This document shows, piece after piece, positions 12,766-23,400 of a stretch of 64,000 nt of DNA. Each line of letters starts with the position of its first letter. Position 1 is the stretch's first letter. Both the position numbers and the translations under genes were made by a program. The stretch comes from Botryllus schlosseri (lineage: Eukaryota). Below the pieces are notes generated by a model, which saw only the letters and a list, made by a program, of their open reading frames with translations, had not been told where the DNA came from and did no database searches. The DNA is taken from positions 20,584,001-20,648,000 of the forward strand of contig CM119374.1 in NCBI GenBank assembly GCA_051294905.1, read 5' to 3'.

Positions 12766-15700
12766 CTATCTAACATCACACCTTCCCACAAAAAGATTAG
12801 AAATTAGACACTGCACTTGGACTGGCAGAGAAATCAATTTTACTACGGTCTTCAGCGAAGAACCTTTTGGGTAGGTAGTTGCGCGCTGTGCACGATCTGC
12901 TGATACAGCGGCTTCAGTCCAAACTCTCCAGGACTCCAGCAAAGCGTCGGTCGGCACAAAATCCTCTCTGTTACCGTTGAAGAGGTTTGCAATCACGTGG
13001 GTGTAAGCGTGTTCGACAGTTGTATTAGGAACAAACGCGCTGCAATGAAATAGGATTAGTCAAAAGCAGTTATTACTGGTACCTTATCTAAACAGATGTC
13101 GTGAATAGGGATAGAAAATTTGAATCGGAGCAGATTCGAATCAGAAATCGAATTTCTACATTTTTATTGATCGAAATTTCGCCATACAGTACCTTTCAGA
13201 GCCCCGATTCTATACTTCTAATTCAGTAGTTTTTATATGCCTTGAAATTCGCGCCTACTACTAGCCGAGTACGATCGATGTCTGCTTCGCCTATGGATGC
13301 AACTCAATCACAAGTACAAGTTACGGCCTCCTAGAGAGGTGGTCAAAGTAGTCAAGAAAGCTACTCAAGTAGAAGTAGGAGCAAAAAATCTACTCAAGTA
13401 CGAGTAGAAGTACTTCTTTCATGAGCAGCCTAAAACTACTTGAAGTAGAAGTCGAATTGACTGACTTTAAATCTACTCAAGTAGGTAGTTGTGAAAGCGA
13501 TCGTAATTCGTTCGCATGGACTGTCAAACGCTGCAAATGGCGCTATGCGGACGGTGTAGAGAGCTTGATTCATATTGATGCATCCCAGGTGTTAATTTTT
13601 GACAGAATATGCAGTCGTCCACATCATGGGATGTAAATCATAGTATTGCGATACTAATCCTTTGTTGACTCGAAAACCCGGTTTTAGGGAACATCATGGC
13701 ATGGCGCCCTCTCCCATATCATAAGGCCCCTAGTTCAGTCGAAGAGCAACACGGAGAAGTTGTGTCGGATACAACTTTAACACTTTCCGCGATTAGTATA
13801 CGTTAATTAAAAGTATGGACGATCGTAAAATACCATATAGTGTATAAGGAAAGTATAAGGCATTACTACACTTGCTTTTATACTTCAACATGTATGTTCT
13901 CCGGACAAAAGAACTGAAACTATAATTAGAACTCAACGCATAATACTCGTAATTGAAAGAAAAAGAAAAATATTTCATGACTTTTGTCCAGAAAGTTTCA
14001 ACGGTGGTCTGCTAAAACAGGTCTAACGATAAAAAAAGTGAAAGCCCACTTATCCAGATTAAGACACGTCATGGGCTGCTAGGTATAATAGGTAATTGCT
14101 AGATTGCGAAACGGTAGTTTCAAACGTTATGGGGGGCCACACTTACTGAGATGAAATATTTGATAATGGCGACAATGCGGTGTGAACGGAACCATGCAAC
14201 CCGGTATCTAAGTTATATTCAGCGATACTTTCGTTAAAACATATCTGTCACTCCACTGTGCGCGAAGCGCAACGAAAATTCTGGGTATGTCATAACTTTT
14301 ATGAAAATTAAATGTTGATACTACTTGAACAGCTTAGAAATTCCTTAGGCTATCTTTCTTATTGGGGGATTACACTACTTCTACTTAACAAACTGATAAG
14401 TAAGCGAGTAGTTCACAAAATATTACAAAGTAGAAATAGTGAAAAAAGATGTACTTGAGTAAGTAACAGTAGAGGAAAACTACTTGAGTACTTCGATAAA
14501 GTAGAAGTACTTCGTTACTGACCACCTGACAAAACCATTTCAAGTAGAAGTAGAAATTAAAATGTCTGAGAAATAATCGAGTAAGTAAAGTTAAGAAGTA
14601 GAAGATGGCCAGACATTTGTAGGTTGATGGGCAGTACCAGTTTTCAAGATTGCCTGGTCCATCTTAGCGACTTAACACAAAATGTGATTCCGGGATGAAA
14701 ACAGGCGAGACCTTGAAATTATAACCTGTCACCTTCATGCAAGGACTTTCTAGTGGAGTTGTCCGACAATTTCGCTCACATACATCACCCGAGTTTATCT
14801 GTATACTTGGTGTTAATGGACAAATTTAAGCTGATGTACTTCGTTACTGAACAATGAACATTCATGGATCACAGATGCTTGGAATTGAAGATGGATCTAG
14901 TTTCGATTTTGACCCCTTTCGGAGTGGAAAGCAAGGTCCGTTAGTCAGTCCACAAGAAATTACTTACACGAAACACTGTCCTTTCTGCCCGAATATTGAT
15001 ACGTTTTCAAATTTTTCCGTTTCAATCCATCCAGGCGGCAAATAACTCTCAGAAACCGGCAGTTCACGGCTTATCAGCAAGGCAGGAGAAGTCATATCGC
15101 CATGACATCTTACAAACACGATCTGTGGTGTCGACCCACAAGCTGAACATGGAAATGAGATTTTGTCGTCGCCTGTACTGCTCAGAATGTTAACAAGAAC
15201 ATACCATCGATTTTCCTGCTATTTGACGCATTTCTTCTGAACACAATACGGACGTAGACGTTCTTTTGCCTCATTTGCTTTCCGGAAGTTAACCAGACTG
15301 GCACGTTTTCCCATTTAGGACCCGTTATGCGTATGCGAGCTCCTAAAATACATGCGGGAATATCAGAGGCGGTCACTAATGAAGTACTTCTACTTTTTCA
15401 GAGCACTCGAGTAGGCTTCGCCTTCTTGTACTACTTACTCAAGTGGTTTTGCATTTAGGCTACTACTGGCTTACTTACACTTTTATGCAAAGTAGAAAGT
15501 AGTTTTAGGATGTGCTTGCATTAGTTTTGCCTGTGAAATTGTCATGACAATTGTGTGAAACAGCCCTCGTGTCATTATATCTGAATATATTTTCAGAACT
15601 TGTGCCTGCTTGTAGTGCCATTACTCGGTCTGCATCAGTCGCAAAGATGCACTCTGCAATTCCTAAAATATCCACCTCCGATCAACTGCTAAAAGCACGC

Positions 15701-18700
15701 AATCCTTGACTAAATCTGATTTTTGGAACTAATAGAGTACTTTTCTTAGTAGCAGGCTCCTTACTTGAGAAATTTTCTACGATAATTCTACTGAAGTGCC
15801 AACGCGATCTACGTTGAACACCTCCGATCGCTTTCTACATTCTGTGTCTTGAGAGGATGAAGATGATAGTGATAGACCCCCACCCCCGGCGATATTGCAT
15901 CGATGAAAGTGACCAGATTGAAACAGATACTGGAATTCTTTTCCAGCGGAACTAATCTGGGTGTTTATCGGGGGAGATAGCGTAGTGGTGAGCATCAGCG
16001 CCATTCAAGCACTAGGCATGGGTTCCATTCCCACCACCGGAGGTTATTCTGGGCTCCTCGTACCCTATGTCCTTGTTCTTACCGCGACAAAAAAGACTTG
16101 ATAAAGAAAGAAAAGGAGCAAGAAATAGCTTCCAATTATAAGACCGACGAAGAAAGAATAACATCGAAGAAGACTGTGATATTGGGCACTAGGTCGAGGT
16201 GGACGCCAGTTCAAAAGACCCCAACTGGAAGGCCGTTCGGCATCCCCCTATCCGTTCATTAAATCGCATTGTAGATTTTGTGTCTTGGGCAGATGAAAAT
16301 ATAATCTGTCCATTGATTGCACTGCATAACCAGAAAATTGGATGTCGATGCCTTTTAGCTTACTTGCAAAAGTAGCGAGAGATGAACCCTTCTTTCTAGT
16401 TTCCATCGAAACTTCCTCGGAGTATCCTGCGAAAGCAATGGAAATTTCCAGAAGCCATTTTACAGGCAAACCCGTTACAACAGATATTCTATTTTGGCAA
16501 CGCCATGATATCATTGTTATCACAGAAAATTGTATATTGATAATTCTGGCATATCAAATCTGATTTGTAAGAAAAGTTGTTACTATCCATTAGGCTTCGA
16601 ATTGGGCTGAAGTAAGTCCTACCTGACTCAGATATGACATGAGCATCGATGCAGGATAAGAGCAAATTTGGACCATGTATGAGATCAACAACGAGTAGGC
16701 CTAACCATCACACACTTGAATACAATTTCGCATAATAACAATCAGGTATTCAATTTGAAAGAAATTACAAACCACTTTATATCAACTCGGTTTATCGCTC
16801 AAAAAAATTAAAATTAATGACACTAGAGCACCAAGACCTACCTTTGTACTGAGCTAGTTGCAGATCTTCCAGAGTCACCGTTGAAATGTTTTTCATCAGT
16901 TGCAATCGAGATTCTTCGCTTGTCATATCTCTCGTCACGAGACAAAGGACTTCCGTAAGATGGTTCTGTAACATGTCCCGCACAACTCCCGATCTGTCAT
17001 AATACGATGTCCTTCCTGCAAAGTATTCAGGTATTTAGACTCAGGAAATATTTTGACTCGGGCACAATAATAGTCCAGCTCGTATTCCGATTCCGGTGGA
17101 GTGAGAATTTTTGACCTCTTGCGACTAATTTTGTTGTAAGTTGTAACCCATTTTTGTTGTGACTTATTTCTGTCCTTGATATTTTTGCGGCATATACACT
17201 GACTCATGATATTCATACACACGATCTGTGCATATGCATACCACGAGTGCATGATGTGCATATGCCGATGGACAAGAAAGATGCAGATATACTTTGTCAA
17301 TGATCGTTACTGTTTTGATACTTTTCTGCCACTTTGTTTGAAAACGTTGGGCGACCGTATCAAAGCATCCAAAACACGTACCGAAATCACACGCTATGCA
17401 TTTTCACAGAAATAACATCTATCAGTGGACTGCGAAGTAGTGAACGACCCTGAGCATTGCCACCTGCAGTTGTAATGTGTGAAATTATTTCTGATCAAGA
17501 GTAACAAGGCAGTATTTTATGGCAGTCCCGTAAAAGATACATGTATACTTGAACTCTCAAATGTTTTTTTGTTTTATTGCATAAGGCAACGTTGAGTAAT
17601 GCTTCAATACTCGACTCACAATCGAACCCCTTGGGCACCCTTATTTTGAGCAGTTCTACTTAGGAAGAAACACTAACATAGGGTTACTATATTCTGGAAT
17701 TCTGAAAAAGAGGACACTTTTTCAAAATTTTCAGACTTACAATTCTGGAGCAAAATCCGAAAAAAGTGGTCGGTTGACTAAAAAAAAGGTAAACTTTCAG
17801 CACCCAATATAGCCGCCAGAGCATTACTATAGTGCTTATTTAATGTACCTCAGTCGAATTTTACCGTATATGCAACCAAAATTCTTAAAAAGAGGACAAA
17901 ATCTCAAAAAGGAGGACATTTGGGTTTTCTACTTCCTACTAGACAAAATTTAAATAGAAGAAGTATTTTGCTTACAAAAATTCAAAATATGAACCGCTTG
18001 ACATAAGAAGTGTTGAGAGGCAAATTATTCAGTACATGCTATCTTTTTACGCGGTTCAACAACATCAATTCATTACTGATCAAGTGATCATCCATAACCA
18101 ACAGGTGACGATAAGCAGGGCTTTGGAGTGGGAGCAAGGAGCAAGATGTTTGTAAATATCTCCGGCTCTGATGTATTTCATAAGATGCGATAATATTACT
18201 ATATTGCCCTTTTTGGGTCACTTTATCTACGTAACCACAGTGCTGTGGATTTGACAGCGGAGCAGTCACATTTCCATAGCTGTAACTGATGTTACTGACT
18301 ATTGAATCACCCATTTGATAGTATTCCCTCAAGTATTTAATCTAGCCGGAGCAGTGGTATCAATGAGCTTCAGAGCCAAATCATTTAACATTTGCACCTT
18401 CTCCAAAGCCCTGAGCCGCCCCCTGACCATACGTGTAGAATTGAATAAAAATACTCGCCTTGACATCCGACTGTTTCAACGGCAGTCACTTCTATACGCT
18501 TCACATAACGCTTGTTCAAAAGACGTTCCAAATCCGGGTTCCTAGCTCGGAAGTCCGAAATCTGACTGATGGTAGCATCCGAAAGGAAGTGGTCAACCCT
18601 GTATAGGTAGATTTCACCAGCTTTCAATGGCAATGGTAGTGGTACCGTGTAGGGATGGTCAGGTCAGTAATGAAACACTTTTATGGAGCACTGAAATTGG

Positions 18701-20455
18701 CTACTTTCACTCCTTACATTTAGACAACTTCCACTATTACTTCAACAGTTTATTTAGGCAAAACGACTTACATTTAACACTTTCGATTTTGAAAATTAGA
18801 CAGTAGTTCTGTGATGACTGTCACGGTAACTGAATATATTTTCGAAAATGGTATCTGGTAGGGTTACCACATTTTGGAATCAGGAAATGAGGACAATTTT
18901 TGAAAATGATAACAGTTAGTTTACCGAAATTGAAAATAGCTGATTTTGAAATGTTTACCGGAAATATTGTGTTGACTAAAAAAGGTCATAACTTTGACTT
19001 GACTCCAGCATTACCCACTTATTTACAATGTTTGTGTTGACTACAAAGAAATAGGTAAAACTTCTGACTCAGCTCCCGAAATACCCGTATTTTACGTTAA
19101 TTTTGTGGTGTTGACTAAAAAAAAAGCTATCATTATGATTCGGCTCCTGAATGACCGACTCGAACGTCCGCATTACCTATTTCCAGTTGACCCTGTCCAT
19201 TAGCCTAGCTGTAAATGCTGTAAAGGAGGACATTTAGGCGTCCTTGGACGACATTTCCAATTCCTGAAAAGGAGGACAAATCAGCCTGATGAAGGACGTA
19301 TGGTAACCCTAGTATCGGGTGTCCATTTGTGGCGTCATTTTTGGCATCCATGAAGACGCATCCTGCAATTCCAAAAATATCCATTTCCGATCAGGTACCC
19401 TACTATTTTTTTAAATAATTTGAGCAGCTCTTAGGCATTCTATAGTTACTACTGTCATTTCAAGGAGTTTTGACATGTCTTTGAAATTGTAATTTGAGTA
19501 TAATTTACCGCGTTACATACATCTACTTGAGTAGCAACGCTGACTACTTTGACCACCGGTGGTGCTGTGATAAATTCATTACATAGGCATATTATATGCA
19601 GGCTACTTTCACAACGTTGAGCAATGATTGTTAATGTAGTAATGTGAATCTGGCAATGTATATTTCACTCAACAGTGAACAGTTTTTTTTAAATTGACCT
19701 GACATGTTACTTAACATGCACAAAGGTTTGGTGATACATGCAGCCACCTCGATGCTGCAAAGGATATTTAGCATTTACAAAGCTACTTCTTCCTAAGCGT
19801 AGCGGAATTTAAACTCTTCTTCACATTGAACAAGCCAAGAATCAAGAATCCAATAGCTGCGGGCTACTTACCTATAAATTTGCTTTTCAGACAGATATTT
19901 TGCCAGTAAATTCGACAGCGACAATGAAGATTGAAAATCTGTTCCAAACGGCTTTTCAAAAGCAAACTTGAAGTTTTTTGACGAGTCTGTGATGTTGCAG
20001 TGGCTCGCAACTGATTGAAGTATCCCTCGATATGCCACAGGCGGGACAGATAGATAGAATATGATGTTTGATGAATTCAAGTTGATCCAAGTACATAGTC
20101 TTTTATAATCAGCGTCATCTTTCAAGACTTCATATTGACACCGTGACACAAATTCACTTCGATACTTTAAGCATTGGCTGTCACTTTTATCACAACGTAT
20201 GGATTCGGTGACAATTTCCTGGAATGCTTGATTAGAAACTTTGGATTTAGCCCCTCCATATAGCGAGATATCTGTGATATTTCTTTCTTTTTGAGCCAAA
20301 ATATACAGGGCATTCCATAAATACCTTTTCGCCAAGTCACCCGTGGCACCAACCACAATGACGTCCAATGTCCGCAAGTCGGCTGCTATTTGTGGTAATG
20401 TCAAGATACATGCAAAGATGGCAAGAAAAATCAATTCTTTAACGCGCATATTCAT
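12766..20455 (-). CDS. H6PD: Hexose-6-phosphate dehydrogenase-like (ER-luminal G6PD paralogue), 7 exons, 515 aa, G6PD domain only. Exons: 20455-19872, 18598-18459, 17015-16842, 16426-16364, 15342-15205, 15142-14968, 13039-12766
   Basis: Signal peptide, GATGDLAK, FEKPFG, RVDHFL, GRTSYYDRSGVVRDMLQNHLTEVL, KWENVPVWLTSGK, HGDMTSPALLIS, LLESWRVWT. Exon lengths sum to 1548 nt in frame. All introns are GT-AG except intron 2 (GC-AG). AATAAA on - strand at 12641-12646. Confidence 0.92.
13336..14528. mobile_element. DNA-transposon-derived element with AAGTAG/CTCAAGTA subterminal repeats (H6PD intron 6)
   Basis: Ends (G)AGGTGGTCA / TGACCACCTG with dense AAGTAG arrays at 13340-13480 and 14380-14520. Related fragments at ~15365-15510 and 19520-19558. 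No clear TSD. Confidence 0.55.
15970..16254 (+). mobile_element. tRNA-derived SINE (H6PD intron 4)
   Basis: Pol III A box TAGCGTAGTGG (15978-15988), degenerate B box GGTTCCATTCC (16021-16031), followed by GGTT.TCTGGGCTCCTC core shared with the copies at 51390 and 52126, then a purine-rich body. Confidence 0.65.
17679..17930 (+). mobile_element. Truncated TAGGGTTAC-family hAT MITE
   Basis: Starts TAGGGTTAC, has GAGGACA subterminal repeats and the TTGACTA(A)nGGT module; similar to 18859, 42863 and 59470 copies. Confidence 0.6.
18859..19311. mobile_element. hAT MITE, TIR TAGGGTTACCA (H6PD intron 1)
   Basis: TAGGGTTACCA / TGGTAACCCTA; flanks GTATCTGG / GTATCGGG (7/8 TSD); GAGGACA repeats. Confidence 0.8.
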
Positions 20456-23400
20456 TCACGTTGTGTTTTAAAACATTGGATAGGTTCCCATTTCAGAGAC
20501 AGACATCACAATACCGATCCCATTCGAGATTGTTTCTGGTTTCCATAAAGTCGAAAACCACAGCTAATCGTACTGTATCGTAACTCGTTTGATGGACAGC
20601 GCAATAAAAGTTCTGACAGAAGAAATTGCCACAATGTTAGGTTTTACTACAACCAAAGTACCTGGATATAAGCATTCTAGCTTGATAAAATCATATTTCA
20701 TCTGAGGACGCAGCAAAACAATGCGATGAATTGCAGCAAAACCTTGCAAAACGATGGTAGATGATGCATAACTAAAAGTGAGCGAAAACGTCCTCTAGTG
20801 ACAGCATTCATAGCAAGATTATAAATGGAAACGGAAACATTTCAGGGTTTTGTATCTAATTCGATATGTTTACTGCGCAACTTAACGCATCAAACTTACT
20901 AAAACTAGCCGGGGCCGGGTGAATAAGATCTATATAGAATGACAAGTTAGTTAAACAAATGCTCCAAGACTTTCACTAAGATAGAAATGCACGCATTTCG
21001 GGCGCGCAGTGGTTGGGTTATAGCTCAGTGGTTTACAGTGGTTCGCACACGTTCCTTCATCTTCATTTTGTCTGTTTTGTGAGGGTGTATTTTCAATTGT
21101 TTCCACTGTTGCGAAAACAAAATGAATTTTATGGAGGCTAAAGAAAACTAAAGAATATTTTCCGTAGCGTCGAAATTGGAGACACAAGAACATATCGGCA
21201 TGCCGACACCGGCAGACGAAATTATAATATATACAGTTGCGAATACATTGGACTAGTTAAGGCCCACGATATCCACTACCCCCCACTGCTACAATATTTG
21301 AGGTGGCACGTTGAAACTTTTGTCCCAGGATCGAGGGACTAGGAGTCTAGGATTACTAGTACTACACCATCAAGTGACTGACTGCGACACTACAATAGAT
21401 AAATCACCATCTGGCCGATCCCGATGTCGTTCCTTGCTGCCCTGTTAATCATTATTTGTCCAAGTCGGATACATGCAGTGCAGAAAACGCAGTAAATTAG
21501 AGTTATCTAGATCGGCATATTTACGACATGCCTATGTTTGCTTTCCAGACTCGATATCGCAATTAGCCGAGACATGGTGGTGATGCGAATCAGATATTAT
21601 ACCCTTCATTTTTCAGGCATCATTGGTAGATAGCAGTCATGTTAAGGTCGAAGGTTAATTATAACTGCGGCACGCTGCGCTACGATAAGAATCAGCTGCT
21701 GAAAACCGGCTACTCTGAAAAGATCATCGAAATGGTGGCTACAATAAATAGCACATCAAAGGTATAGCGAATTACATTCAATCTCACTGACTACGCTTTT
21801 ATTAGTTCATTCAAATCATGTTCAGTCAAATCATTCAAATCATGTTCAGTGTTGCCACAGTGTGACGGATAAGATGCAGAAAAGTGCTTGCTAGTGAATT
21901 TCGCTATATCAAATATATACTTGATGAAAATCGCATCGGTGGGAGCGAGAGTGCCGCAGCTTGAACCAATGAGAGTGTGATCTAAAATCAAGTGTGACAA
22001 TAATGTTGTGGCGACTGCATATAAGAGAGAGCGACTGATTTTTGGGGGATTTTGCTTTTGATAACACCGCAGTACACATCTACACAGTACACAAGTGCAT
22101 TATTTTCGATACAGTGCAGAAGTACATAAGTAACCTACGTAGCGAATGCGATAGCTACGTTCACCGCGTGATAGCGCTATCGTGTCTTACTAATTGTCAT
22201 GTGGCCGACTGACCTACATAACGATGATCTCACAAGTTGCGCGAAGATAGCGTGATTTATAGCGCTCTGGCAGGCCGGCCCGTTTGGACATTCCAACGGC
22301 CAAATTAATGAGATTTCATACGGAATGCTCCATCGCATCAGAACACGCTTTTATACTATCTCGAGTATCTCATAGTATGGAGTAAGGGTTGATCAAGAAA
22401 GGAATATTAATGTAATTCGTTGTACATTGGATCGGTGATTGCAGTGCAAGCGATGAGCATTGAGCATATTTATATATATTTATTATAGGAAACTAGTTCT
22501 AATCAATGTGGCGAACATAATCGTTGATTAATGATCATATGCCCACAGATTTTGAAATCGGCAAGCTGCTTAGCCCTTGCATAAGCTCAAAATCCTTTAC
22601 CATTACTCCGTGTAATACCCGTGTCTCTGTCGTGATACTATTGTGTCTCTTATCTTTATAACATGTTAAATGTTGACGCTGACCCAATAGACGATTGAAG
22701 CTGCCGTGGGTACGAATACCTTTTTGTATTCAATTCAACTGTATACTGTTTCTTCGCGAGAATGGCTGTTTAATTCATTTCGCGAAATACTACGAGATTA
22801 TGGTTCACGTTCGAATTACGTTTTAGACAGATTCAGTCCAACGGCATCATGTTGAATCTTCGATAAAATGCTGAGTGTGAATCGTAGTGAAGTGACCACT
22901 CGCTGCGAGAGGTAATCTGATTTGTATAATCAGAATTGTCAAGACTAACCTTTGGGGTATAGCCGTTCAAGCGGAAACTGTCTGTAACACAAAGTGATAA
23001 CAGTTGGCAAAAGTAGGGCGGTAATATGTTAGCTGCGCTGCAGATATCAGATAGCGTGTAGTGCAATGTGTCGAGTGCGAGTACAGTTGAAGCTTGATGT
23101 ATCTACCTACGTATAGCAGAGCGATTTAAATCGTGACGTCGGTTCGTGGTCATTAGCTGACTCTGGTTCATCATAAGCTCACGAGTAGCAGTTCAGTGTT
23201 GCTACTACAGTAGATCACATCGAGTACGCTCTTCCATCTAATCGATCTTGTGGATCTGATACCGCTACCTATGTTCAAATCATTAGGGAATATTCTGTGC
23301 TTTTTGGGAAACGTAATCGCACCGAATCTAATATAATTTGTGAAGTAATTTGTAACGCCTCCAATTTGGCGACAGGAAACGTAACATCATCGTGGCCAGA

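Follow-up and report, generated by a model that had tools for sequence, protein, structure and literature searches.

The H6PD-like gene and its structure

The window analysed here is a stretch of 64,000 nucleotides from Botryllus schlosseri (GenBank assembly GCA_051294905.1, contig CM119374.1, positions 20,584,001 to 20,648,000 of the forward strand). On its minus strand, at 20455..12766, lies an H6PD-type (hexose-6-phosphate dehydrogenase) gene, whose seven exons, stop codon included, encode a protein of 515 residues with no internal stop. At residues 195-202 this protein reads RVDHFLSD, where the consensus of the family formed by H6PD and glucose-6-phosphate dehydrogenase (G6PD) is R[IV]DHYLGK. 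An earlier note on this DNA had reported the peptide as carrying the changes Y>F, G>S, and K>D; we found all three in the genome and in spliced RNA, on the minus strand and with the Arg codon split by an intron, two points on which the note is silent.

Exons were assembled from spliced RNA contigs of two older sequencing runs of the same organism (X1 and X2; 14900-20500), together with homology to the Styela clava protein P0002. The features of the gene are as follows.

12766..20455, minus strand: coding region of the H6PD-like gene, from spliced RNA contigs and Styela homology; frame intact
19872..20455, minus strand: exon 1; Pfam G6PD_N at 4e-30; joint 19872/18598 in X2 contig 11
20455-20381, minus strand: signal-peptide-like N-terminus, residues 1-25, in exon 1
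20350-20327, minus strand: GATGDLAK, residues 36-43, in exon 1
19957-19943, minus strand: EKPFG, residues 167-171, in exon 1
18459..18598, minus strand: exon 2, with the last base of Arg195, VDHFLSD, and Glu236; RNA joints 19872/18598 and 18459/17015
18597-18577, minus strand: VDHFLSD (GTT GAC CAC TTC CTT TCG GAT), in exon 2
18577..18588, minus strand: codons of F199, L200, S201, and D202 (TTC CTT TCG GAT), which replace Y, L, G, and K; no variant letters in RNA
18480-18466, minus strand: VETVG with Glu236, the equivalent of human Glu239, in exon 2
16842..17015, minus strand: exon 3, with RDMLQNH; Pfam G6PD_C at 1.4e-10; RNA joints 18459/17015 and 16842/16426
16980-16960, minus strand: RDMLQNH, residues 254-260, with the equivalents of Asp258 and the catalytic His263
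16364..16426, minus strand: exon 4, 63 nt; joints in X1 and X2 contigs
15205..15342, minus strand: exon 5, with SGKQMRQKN; from RNA contigs and alignment
15286-15260, minus strand: SGKQMRQKN, residues 340-348, the substrate loop, in exon 5
14968..15142, minus strand: exon 6; joint 15205/15142; contig piece ends at 14968; donor GT/GTAAGT
12766..13039, minus strand: exon 7, the C-terminal G6PD_C part to the stop; junction by reading frame and homology only; Pfam G6PD_C at 1.4e-5

The joints that frame the altered peptide are directly observed. Both 19872 to 18598 and 18459 to 17015 are present, exactly in frame, in spliced X1/X2 contigs, and a single X2 contig of 1007 nt connects exons 1, 2, and 3. 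Exon 1 ends in ...ATT TAT AG/gtaagt, with the donor TATAG/GTAAGT at 19872, and exon 2 begins with the G at 18598, which is preceded by ...ctacctatacag. The codon of Arg195 is therefore divided by intron 1 into AG (19873-19872, exon 1) and G (18598, exon 2). These contigs derive from RNA, because they are spliced and because searches of the genome with Pfam profiles and proteins found no processed copy of the gene.

An intron within the Arg codon of RVDH appears to be a tunicate-specific feature. Two exon-1 homologues, P0278 (86% identity) and P0001 (55%), both came from Logan sample SRR25569784, and their open reading frames likewise end straight after ...QIYR; in the coral H6PD loci, by contrast, no intron interrupts the motif. 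When the open reading frame of exon 2 was used as a query, no match was obtained. P0278 and P0001 are either from two different species in that sample or paralogues of a single relative. A further Logan transcript, L017, from another sample, encodes a tunicate-type protein that has RIDHYLGK and shares the exon boundaries of the window gene.

All introns have GT-AG borders except intron 2 (17016-18458, minus strand), which is a GC-AG intron (CAAG/GCGAGT...TTTGCAG/GA) whose use is confirmed by spliced contigs from two runs. In L017, by contrast, intron 2 is retained and begins with GT, whereas in the window gene it is spliced. The intron between exons 5 and 6 (15143-15204, minus strand) is very short, at 62 nt, and is also confirmed by spliced contigs. 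For exon 7, the chosen placement is the sole in-frame combination that uses the contig end at 14968.

Two stretches inside intron 2, 17144-17330 and 17705-18078, have RNA depths of hundreds to thousands, as against ~20 on the exons. They show many loose ends, as well as joints to 19068 and 19293, and are probably expressed dispersed repeats or fragments of transposable elements that lie outside the gene proper.

The altered motif in RNA and among homologues

Within the peptide, the Arg, Asp, His, and Leu of RIDHYLGK(E) are retained, and its Tyr, Gly, and Lys are replaced. Compared with the codons TAC, GGC, and AAG of L017, the window has TTC, TCG, and GAT, which amounts to at least 5 substitutions in three of four adjacent codons. 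Alignment to the G6PD of Leuconostoc mesenteroides places the Phe on Y179, the Ser on G181, and the Asp on K182.

No differing letters were seen at 18577-18598 in X1 (which contributes two haplotype contigs), in X2, or in the raw RNA run X22. Elsewhere in exon 2 we observed four polymorphisms; those at 18520 and 18550 are synonymous, and those at 18534 and 18567 produce D217H and S206G, respectively. Sequencing error, which the earlier note had wished to see checked against cDNA, is excluded at the motif codons along with assembly error, given that neither the spliced contigs of two runs nor the raw RNA reads over part of exon 2 show a variant in these codons. Editing of the RNA at this site was rejected as well, since the RNA data carry no differing letters there. 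In addition, a six-frame scan of the window for DH[YFW][LIVM] and tblastn with the exon-2 peptides of Styela and frog found no alternative exon 2 with a canonical motif, only the known exon.

The gene is transcribed, as the spliced contigs in X1 and X2 show, and its protein is under purifying selection. RNA contigs and assembly differ at 28 coding positions, 14 of them synonymous and 14, spread over 12 codons, non-synonymous. With ~285 synonymous sites and ~990 non-synonymous ones, the ratio of non-synonymous to synonymous polymorphism per site (pN/pS) comes to ~0.29, with a binomial p of ~0.001 against neutrality. We also count the 86%-identical exon-1 orthologue in another sample (P0278) as a sign of a working protein.

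These data bear on the idea that the locus is a transcribed gene in early decay (a unitary pseudogene), or else an assembly or sequencing artefact. Low raw RNA read depth and the presence of several unusual substitutions would be consistent with such an origin, but the 515-residue frame is intact over seven correctly spliced exons, the motif is identical across independent RNA data sets and haplotypes, pN/pS is low, and the branch of the protein in the family tree is not accelerated. We regard decay or artefact as very improbable and already largely refuted.

The rarity of the substitution, a departure far removed from chance, was assessed in a MAFFT alignment of 203 homologues, each of at least 440 residues. 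The last position of the motif is Lys in 200 of the 203 and Asp in none, and the three sequences that differ are models that are misaligned or skip an exon, so that all genuine homologues keep the Lys; the near-invariance of RxDHYLGK asserted by the earlier note thus holds. The other two positions vary somewhat more, with Tyr replaced by Phe in 3/203 homologues and Gly by Ala, His, Ser, Gln, or Pro in a few. As to whether the FLSD variant might be widespread among orthologues, which the earlier note had proposed to check by alignment, it was found in none of ~210 homologues, including the two nearest tunicates for which exon 2 is known. The motif is canonical in eight of eight coral H6PD loci recovered from metagenomes, and the metagenome scan for further tunicate loci returned only cnidarian-like H6PDs, all of them canonical. 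The cytosolic G6PD of this same genome (contig C13) retains the motif Lys. Judging from the sequences compared, the changes of Tyr to Phe, Gly to Ser, and Lys to Asp are specific to this lineage.

Family membership, copy number, and the 6PGL domain

Pfam PF00479 (G6PD_N) matches exon 1 at 4.3e-30, and PF02781 (G6PD_C) is matched piecewise by exons 2, 3, 5, and 7, which together span positions 3-279 of the 296 in the profile; of these four, exons 3 and 5 are above the 27-bit PF02781 cut-off. A full HMMER scan with exon 1 over 1.84 billion representatives gave 1837 matches. In a sequence search of the PDB, the best match was human H6PD (8em2) at 1e-20, above all G6PDs at 2e-12. In a quick IQ-TREE tree of 32 sequences, with support given by the Shimodaira-Hasegawa-like approximate likelihood ratio test (SH-aLRT), the window protein falls in the H6PD clade, apart from G6PD (SH-aLRT 100), and within it forms a tunicate subclade with Styela clava XP_039250911 and L017 (SH-aLRT 99). 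The H6PD identity given by the earlier note is therefore borne out by both the tree and the PDB search. The terminal branch of the window protein is 1.09, compared to 0.93 for Styela, and shows no special acceleration.

When all 495 Mb of the genome were searched with PF00479, PF02781, the Styela H6PD, and P0001, only this locus and one G6PD on C13 were returned. The latter is the canonical cytosolic enzyme (EKPFGKD...YRIDHYLGKEMVQNL) and carries RIDHYLGKEMVQNL. A second H6PD paralogue with YLGK was not found in the 495 Mb searched.

The H6PD-like protein has no fused 6PGL domain; its coding sequence ends at residue 515, and PF01182 is without a match in the window. Genome-wide, PF01182 matched two intronless GNPDA-like genes (MRLVILDDY...), at 29.38 Mb on C1 and 28.28 Mb on C4, and one ordinary multi-exon 6PGL gene at 11.81 Mb on C13, apart from the H6PD-like gene; these were the matches considered as a possible H6PD-derived 6PGL that has come detached. 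H6PD was inferred to have become fused to 6PGL before the divergence of sponges and to have been lost in Ciona (Stover et al. 2011, PMC3148214). Because the fusion would predate sponges, the tunicate clade appears to be secondarily unfused. Furthermore, since a styelid-like tunicate has and expresses a gene of the H6PD clade, not all ascidians have lost H6PD. Styelid-type tunicates thus retain a form that has the dehydrogenase but no 6PGL, despite the reported loss in Ciona, which bears on how H6PD has evolved. Our search of the literature on tunicate H6PD found no paper.

The N-terminus, MNMRVKELIFLAIFACILTLPQIAA, has a basic start followed by a 14-residue hydrophobic core, with a mean Kyte-Doolittle value of 2.7 over residues 8-21, and the protein contains seven N-x-S/T sequons. 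This signal-like segment and the sequons, taken by themselves, fit a secretory protein or one of the endoplasmic reticulum (ER).

The rebuilt phosphate clamp and its possible function

In human G6PD, His201, Tyr202, and Lys205 bind the phosphate of the substrate, and Asp200 and His263 form the catalytic dyad (2024 review, PMC11448927); the earlier note's description of Tyr202 and Lys205 as ligands of the glucose 6-phosphate (G6P) phosphate is stated there. Acylation of Lys205 abolishes the activity of human G6PD and leaves its oligomerisation unchanged (bioRxiv 10.64898/2026.10.29.762733). The Lys of RIDHYLGK is among the most invariant residues of G6PD and H6PD, from bacteria to humans, and binding of the sugar phosphate is held to depend on it. 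Reportedly, mutagenesis of Lys182 and Lys343 of the L. mesenteroides enzyme by Vought and colleagues in 2000 assigned ~4 kcal/mol of phosphate binding to each. Given the near-absolute invariance of this Lys, a substrate site rebuilt in this way within the H6PD clade is moderately surprising.

We assigned the residue equivalences of the window protein from alignments to G6PD chains (human 2bhl/6e08; L. mesenteroides 1dpg/1e77). GATGDLAK, EKPFG, and RDMLQNH are all present in the unbroken 515-residue frame, and the statement of the earlier note that the coenzyme motif, EKPFG, and the catalytic QNH are intact stands. Asp197 and His260 align with the human dyad Asp200/His263, while Lys342 corresponds to human Lys360 and Lys347 to human Arg365 or L. 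mesenteroides Lys343. Among 55 columns with at least 90% conservation, 47 are kept, including all the catalytic ones; the kept columns include Lys168 of EKPFG, Asp197, His198, Glu236, Asp255, His260, and Lys342. Three of the eight broken columns lie in the motif, and the other five are A177S, K278R, G296A, T316L, and L344M. The window protein also has CQGR, with Gln in place of the Lys of the H6PD-typical xKGR.

Taken together, the changes are concentrated on the phosphate clamp, and the hydride-transfer machinery is untouched. The reading that we favour as the most parsimonious, with a probability of roughly 0.4, is that the gene encodes a signal-peptide-bearing, NAD(P)-dependent hexose dehydrogenase whose preference has shifted from hexose-6-phosphates to uncharged hexoses. 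The earlier note had raised both a non-phosphorylated sugar as substrate and a pseudo-enzyme, and its interpretation receives partial support here. In this styelid-like tunicate, the only gene of the H6PD clade encodes a dehydrogenase-only protein (G6PD_N and G6PD_C) with a signal-like start for the secretory pathway or the ER. Its Rossmann coenzyme site and catalytic machinery are intact, and the helix that clamps the 6-phosphate has been rebuilt in this lineage only. Loss of the invariant Lys and placement of a carboxylate would cost several kcal/mol in the binding of sugars with an anionic C6, and because C6-anion binding would be weakened in this way, preference would move toward uncharged hexoses such as glucose, with the enzyme still an NAD(P)+-dependent hexose 1-dehydrogenase. 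Asp202 and Ser201 might hydrogen-bond the free 6-OH or substitute for the missing phosphate charge. H6PD is known to oxidise free glucose besides hexose-6-phosphates (PMC3148214), and this weak 'glucose dehydrogenase' side activity would have become the main activity.

A more detailed version, which we put forward tentatively and consider doubtful, is a natural conversion of H6PD into an ER or secretory dehydrogenase that acts on free glucose or some other hexose without charge, in which the carboxylate of Asp202, with Ser201, would fill the phosphate pocket; the enzyme would supply its own negative charge and could be a source of NAD(P)H that does not depend on import of G6P. In these readings the location in the ER, a lost preference for G6P, and a change of substrate are inferred.

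Several observations weigh against a shift to uncharged hexoses. The count of eight broken columns out of 55 compares with 0-3 in other H6PDs, and could alternatively mean that constraint on catalysis has been relaxed. Expression is low, with a depth of ~1-3 in the raw RNA run X22 and none in the exon-containing bins of a second raw RNA run, X24. In addition, the pN/pS of 0.29 is based on no more than 28 differences and reflects constraint at the level of the protein rather than of catalysis. The excess of broken columns and the low expression are also what a pseudo-enzyme might be expected to show, that is, a protein which carries out no useful sugar oxidation and serves instead to bind or buffer NADP(H), as a scaffold, or as a chaperone-like secretory partner. 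Such a role would be in keeping with the loss, and reversal of charge, of the most invariant substrate residue, as well as with the inactivation of G6PD when Lys205 is modified. However, the residues for hydride transfer and coenzyme binding are all kept (GATGDLAK, EKPFG, Asp197, His260, Asp255, and Glu236), a retention that one would not expect of a protein free to lose catalysis over a branch of about the length of Styela's, and the changes cluster in the phosphate clamp rather than being scattered over the active site. We consider a pseudo-enzyme unlikely, but a serious contender.

The remaining points against a shift concern the phosphate site itself. His198, Lys342, and Lys347, which are ligands of phosphate or sugar, remain, and the change of Tyr to Phe alone is found in otherwise canonical G6PDs. 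The 342-347 loop carries a net charge of +3 in both haplotypes; in the alternative haplotype of the X1/X2 contigs, Q343R and R345G occur together, so that the charge is preserved and the Arg is shifted by two positions. A remodelled anion site of this kind could bind G6P, and the protein might then still be a hexose-6-phosphate dehydrogenase in which the change of Lys to Asp is compensated by His198, Lys342, Lys347, and the more basic loop. The equivalents of His201 and Lys360 are indeed kept, human Arg365 has its counterpart in Lys347, the loop SGKQMRQKN has a higher basic charge (+3) than the corresponding loops of relatives (Styela +2, vertebrate H6PD 0), and the gene is under purifying selection. 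Yet not one genuine homologue among the 203, from bacteria to vertebrates, tolerates loss of the Lys, and an Asp at this position would repel the phosphate. Moreover, the charge of the loop varies widely among normal enzymes, which makes +3 weak evidence. Continued use of G6P therefore strikes us as improbable, though it deserves to be kept in mind.

The enzyme could also have acquired a different specificity, for another C6-modified sugar or for a cationic one, such as an amino sugar or a hexose derivative, with Asp202 acting as a specific ligand. The reversal of charge falls exactly where the C6 substituent is bound, and H6PD already accepts several hexose derivatives; on the other hand, no candidate substrate or pathway neighbour has been identified, and the proposal is purely inferential. 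We think it quite improbable.

Whichever of these holds, an expressed and constrained gene in which the catalytic residues are intact and the Lys is replaced by Asp is, for the G6PD/H6PD family, a natural experiment in substrate specificity. If free hexoses are oxidised, the gene would show how the long-known side activity of H6PD can turn into the main one, and the secretory pathway of the tunicate would have a supply of NADPH with no need to import G6P. Were the protein inactive, it would represent an H6PD-derived pseudo-enzyme.

The closest full-length relative is Styela clava XP_039250911 (P0002, 514 residues, annotated 'GDH/6PGL endoplasmic bifunctional protein-like'), with 40% identity over 491 columns. 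Like it, the window protein comprises the dehydrogenase only, lacks a 6PGL domain, and has an N-terminus that is hydrophobic; the two share near-identical blocks such as ETxGCxGRTxYYDxSGVxRDMLQNHLTE. However, where Styela has RVDHYLGK, the Arg of GKRLNER, and CKGR, the window protein has RVDHFLSD, GKQMRQK, and CQGR. With vertebrate H6PD it shares the clade, the N-terminal signal-like segment, GATGDLAK, EKPFG, and the catalytic dyad, but the vertebrate protein has ~790 residues, a C-terminal 6PGL domain, and RVDHYLGK, whereas that of the window has 515 residues, lacks 6PGL, and has lost the Tyr, Gly, and Lys. Finally, the fold, the family, and the catalytic mechanism are those of cytosolic G6PD, as represented by the human and L. 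mesenteroides chains used for alignment, although the window protein belongs to a different paralogue clade.

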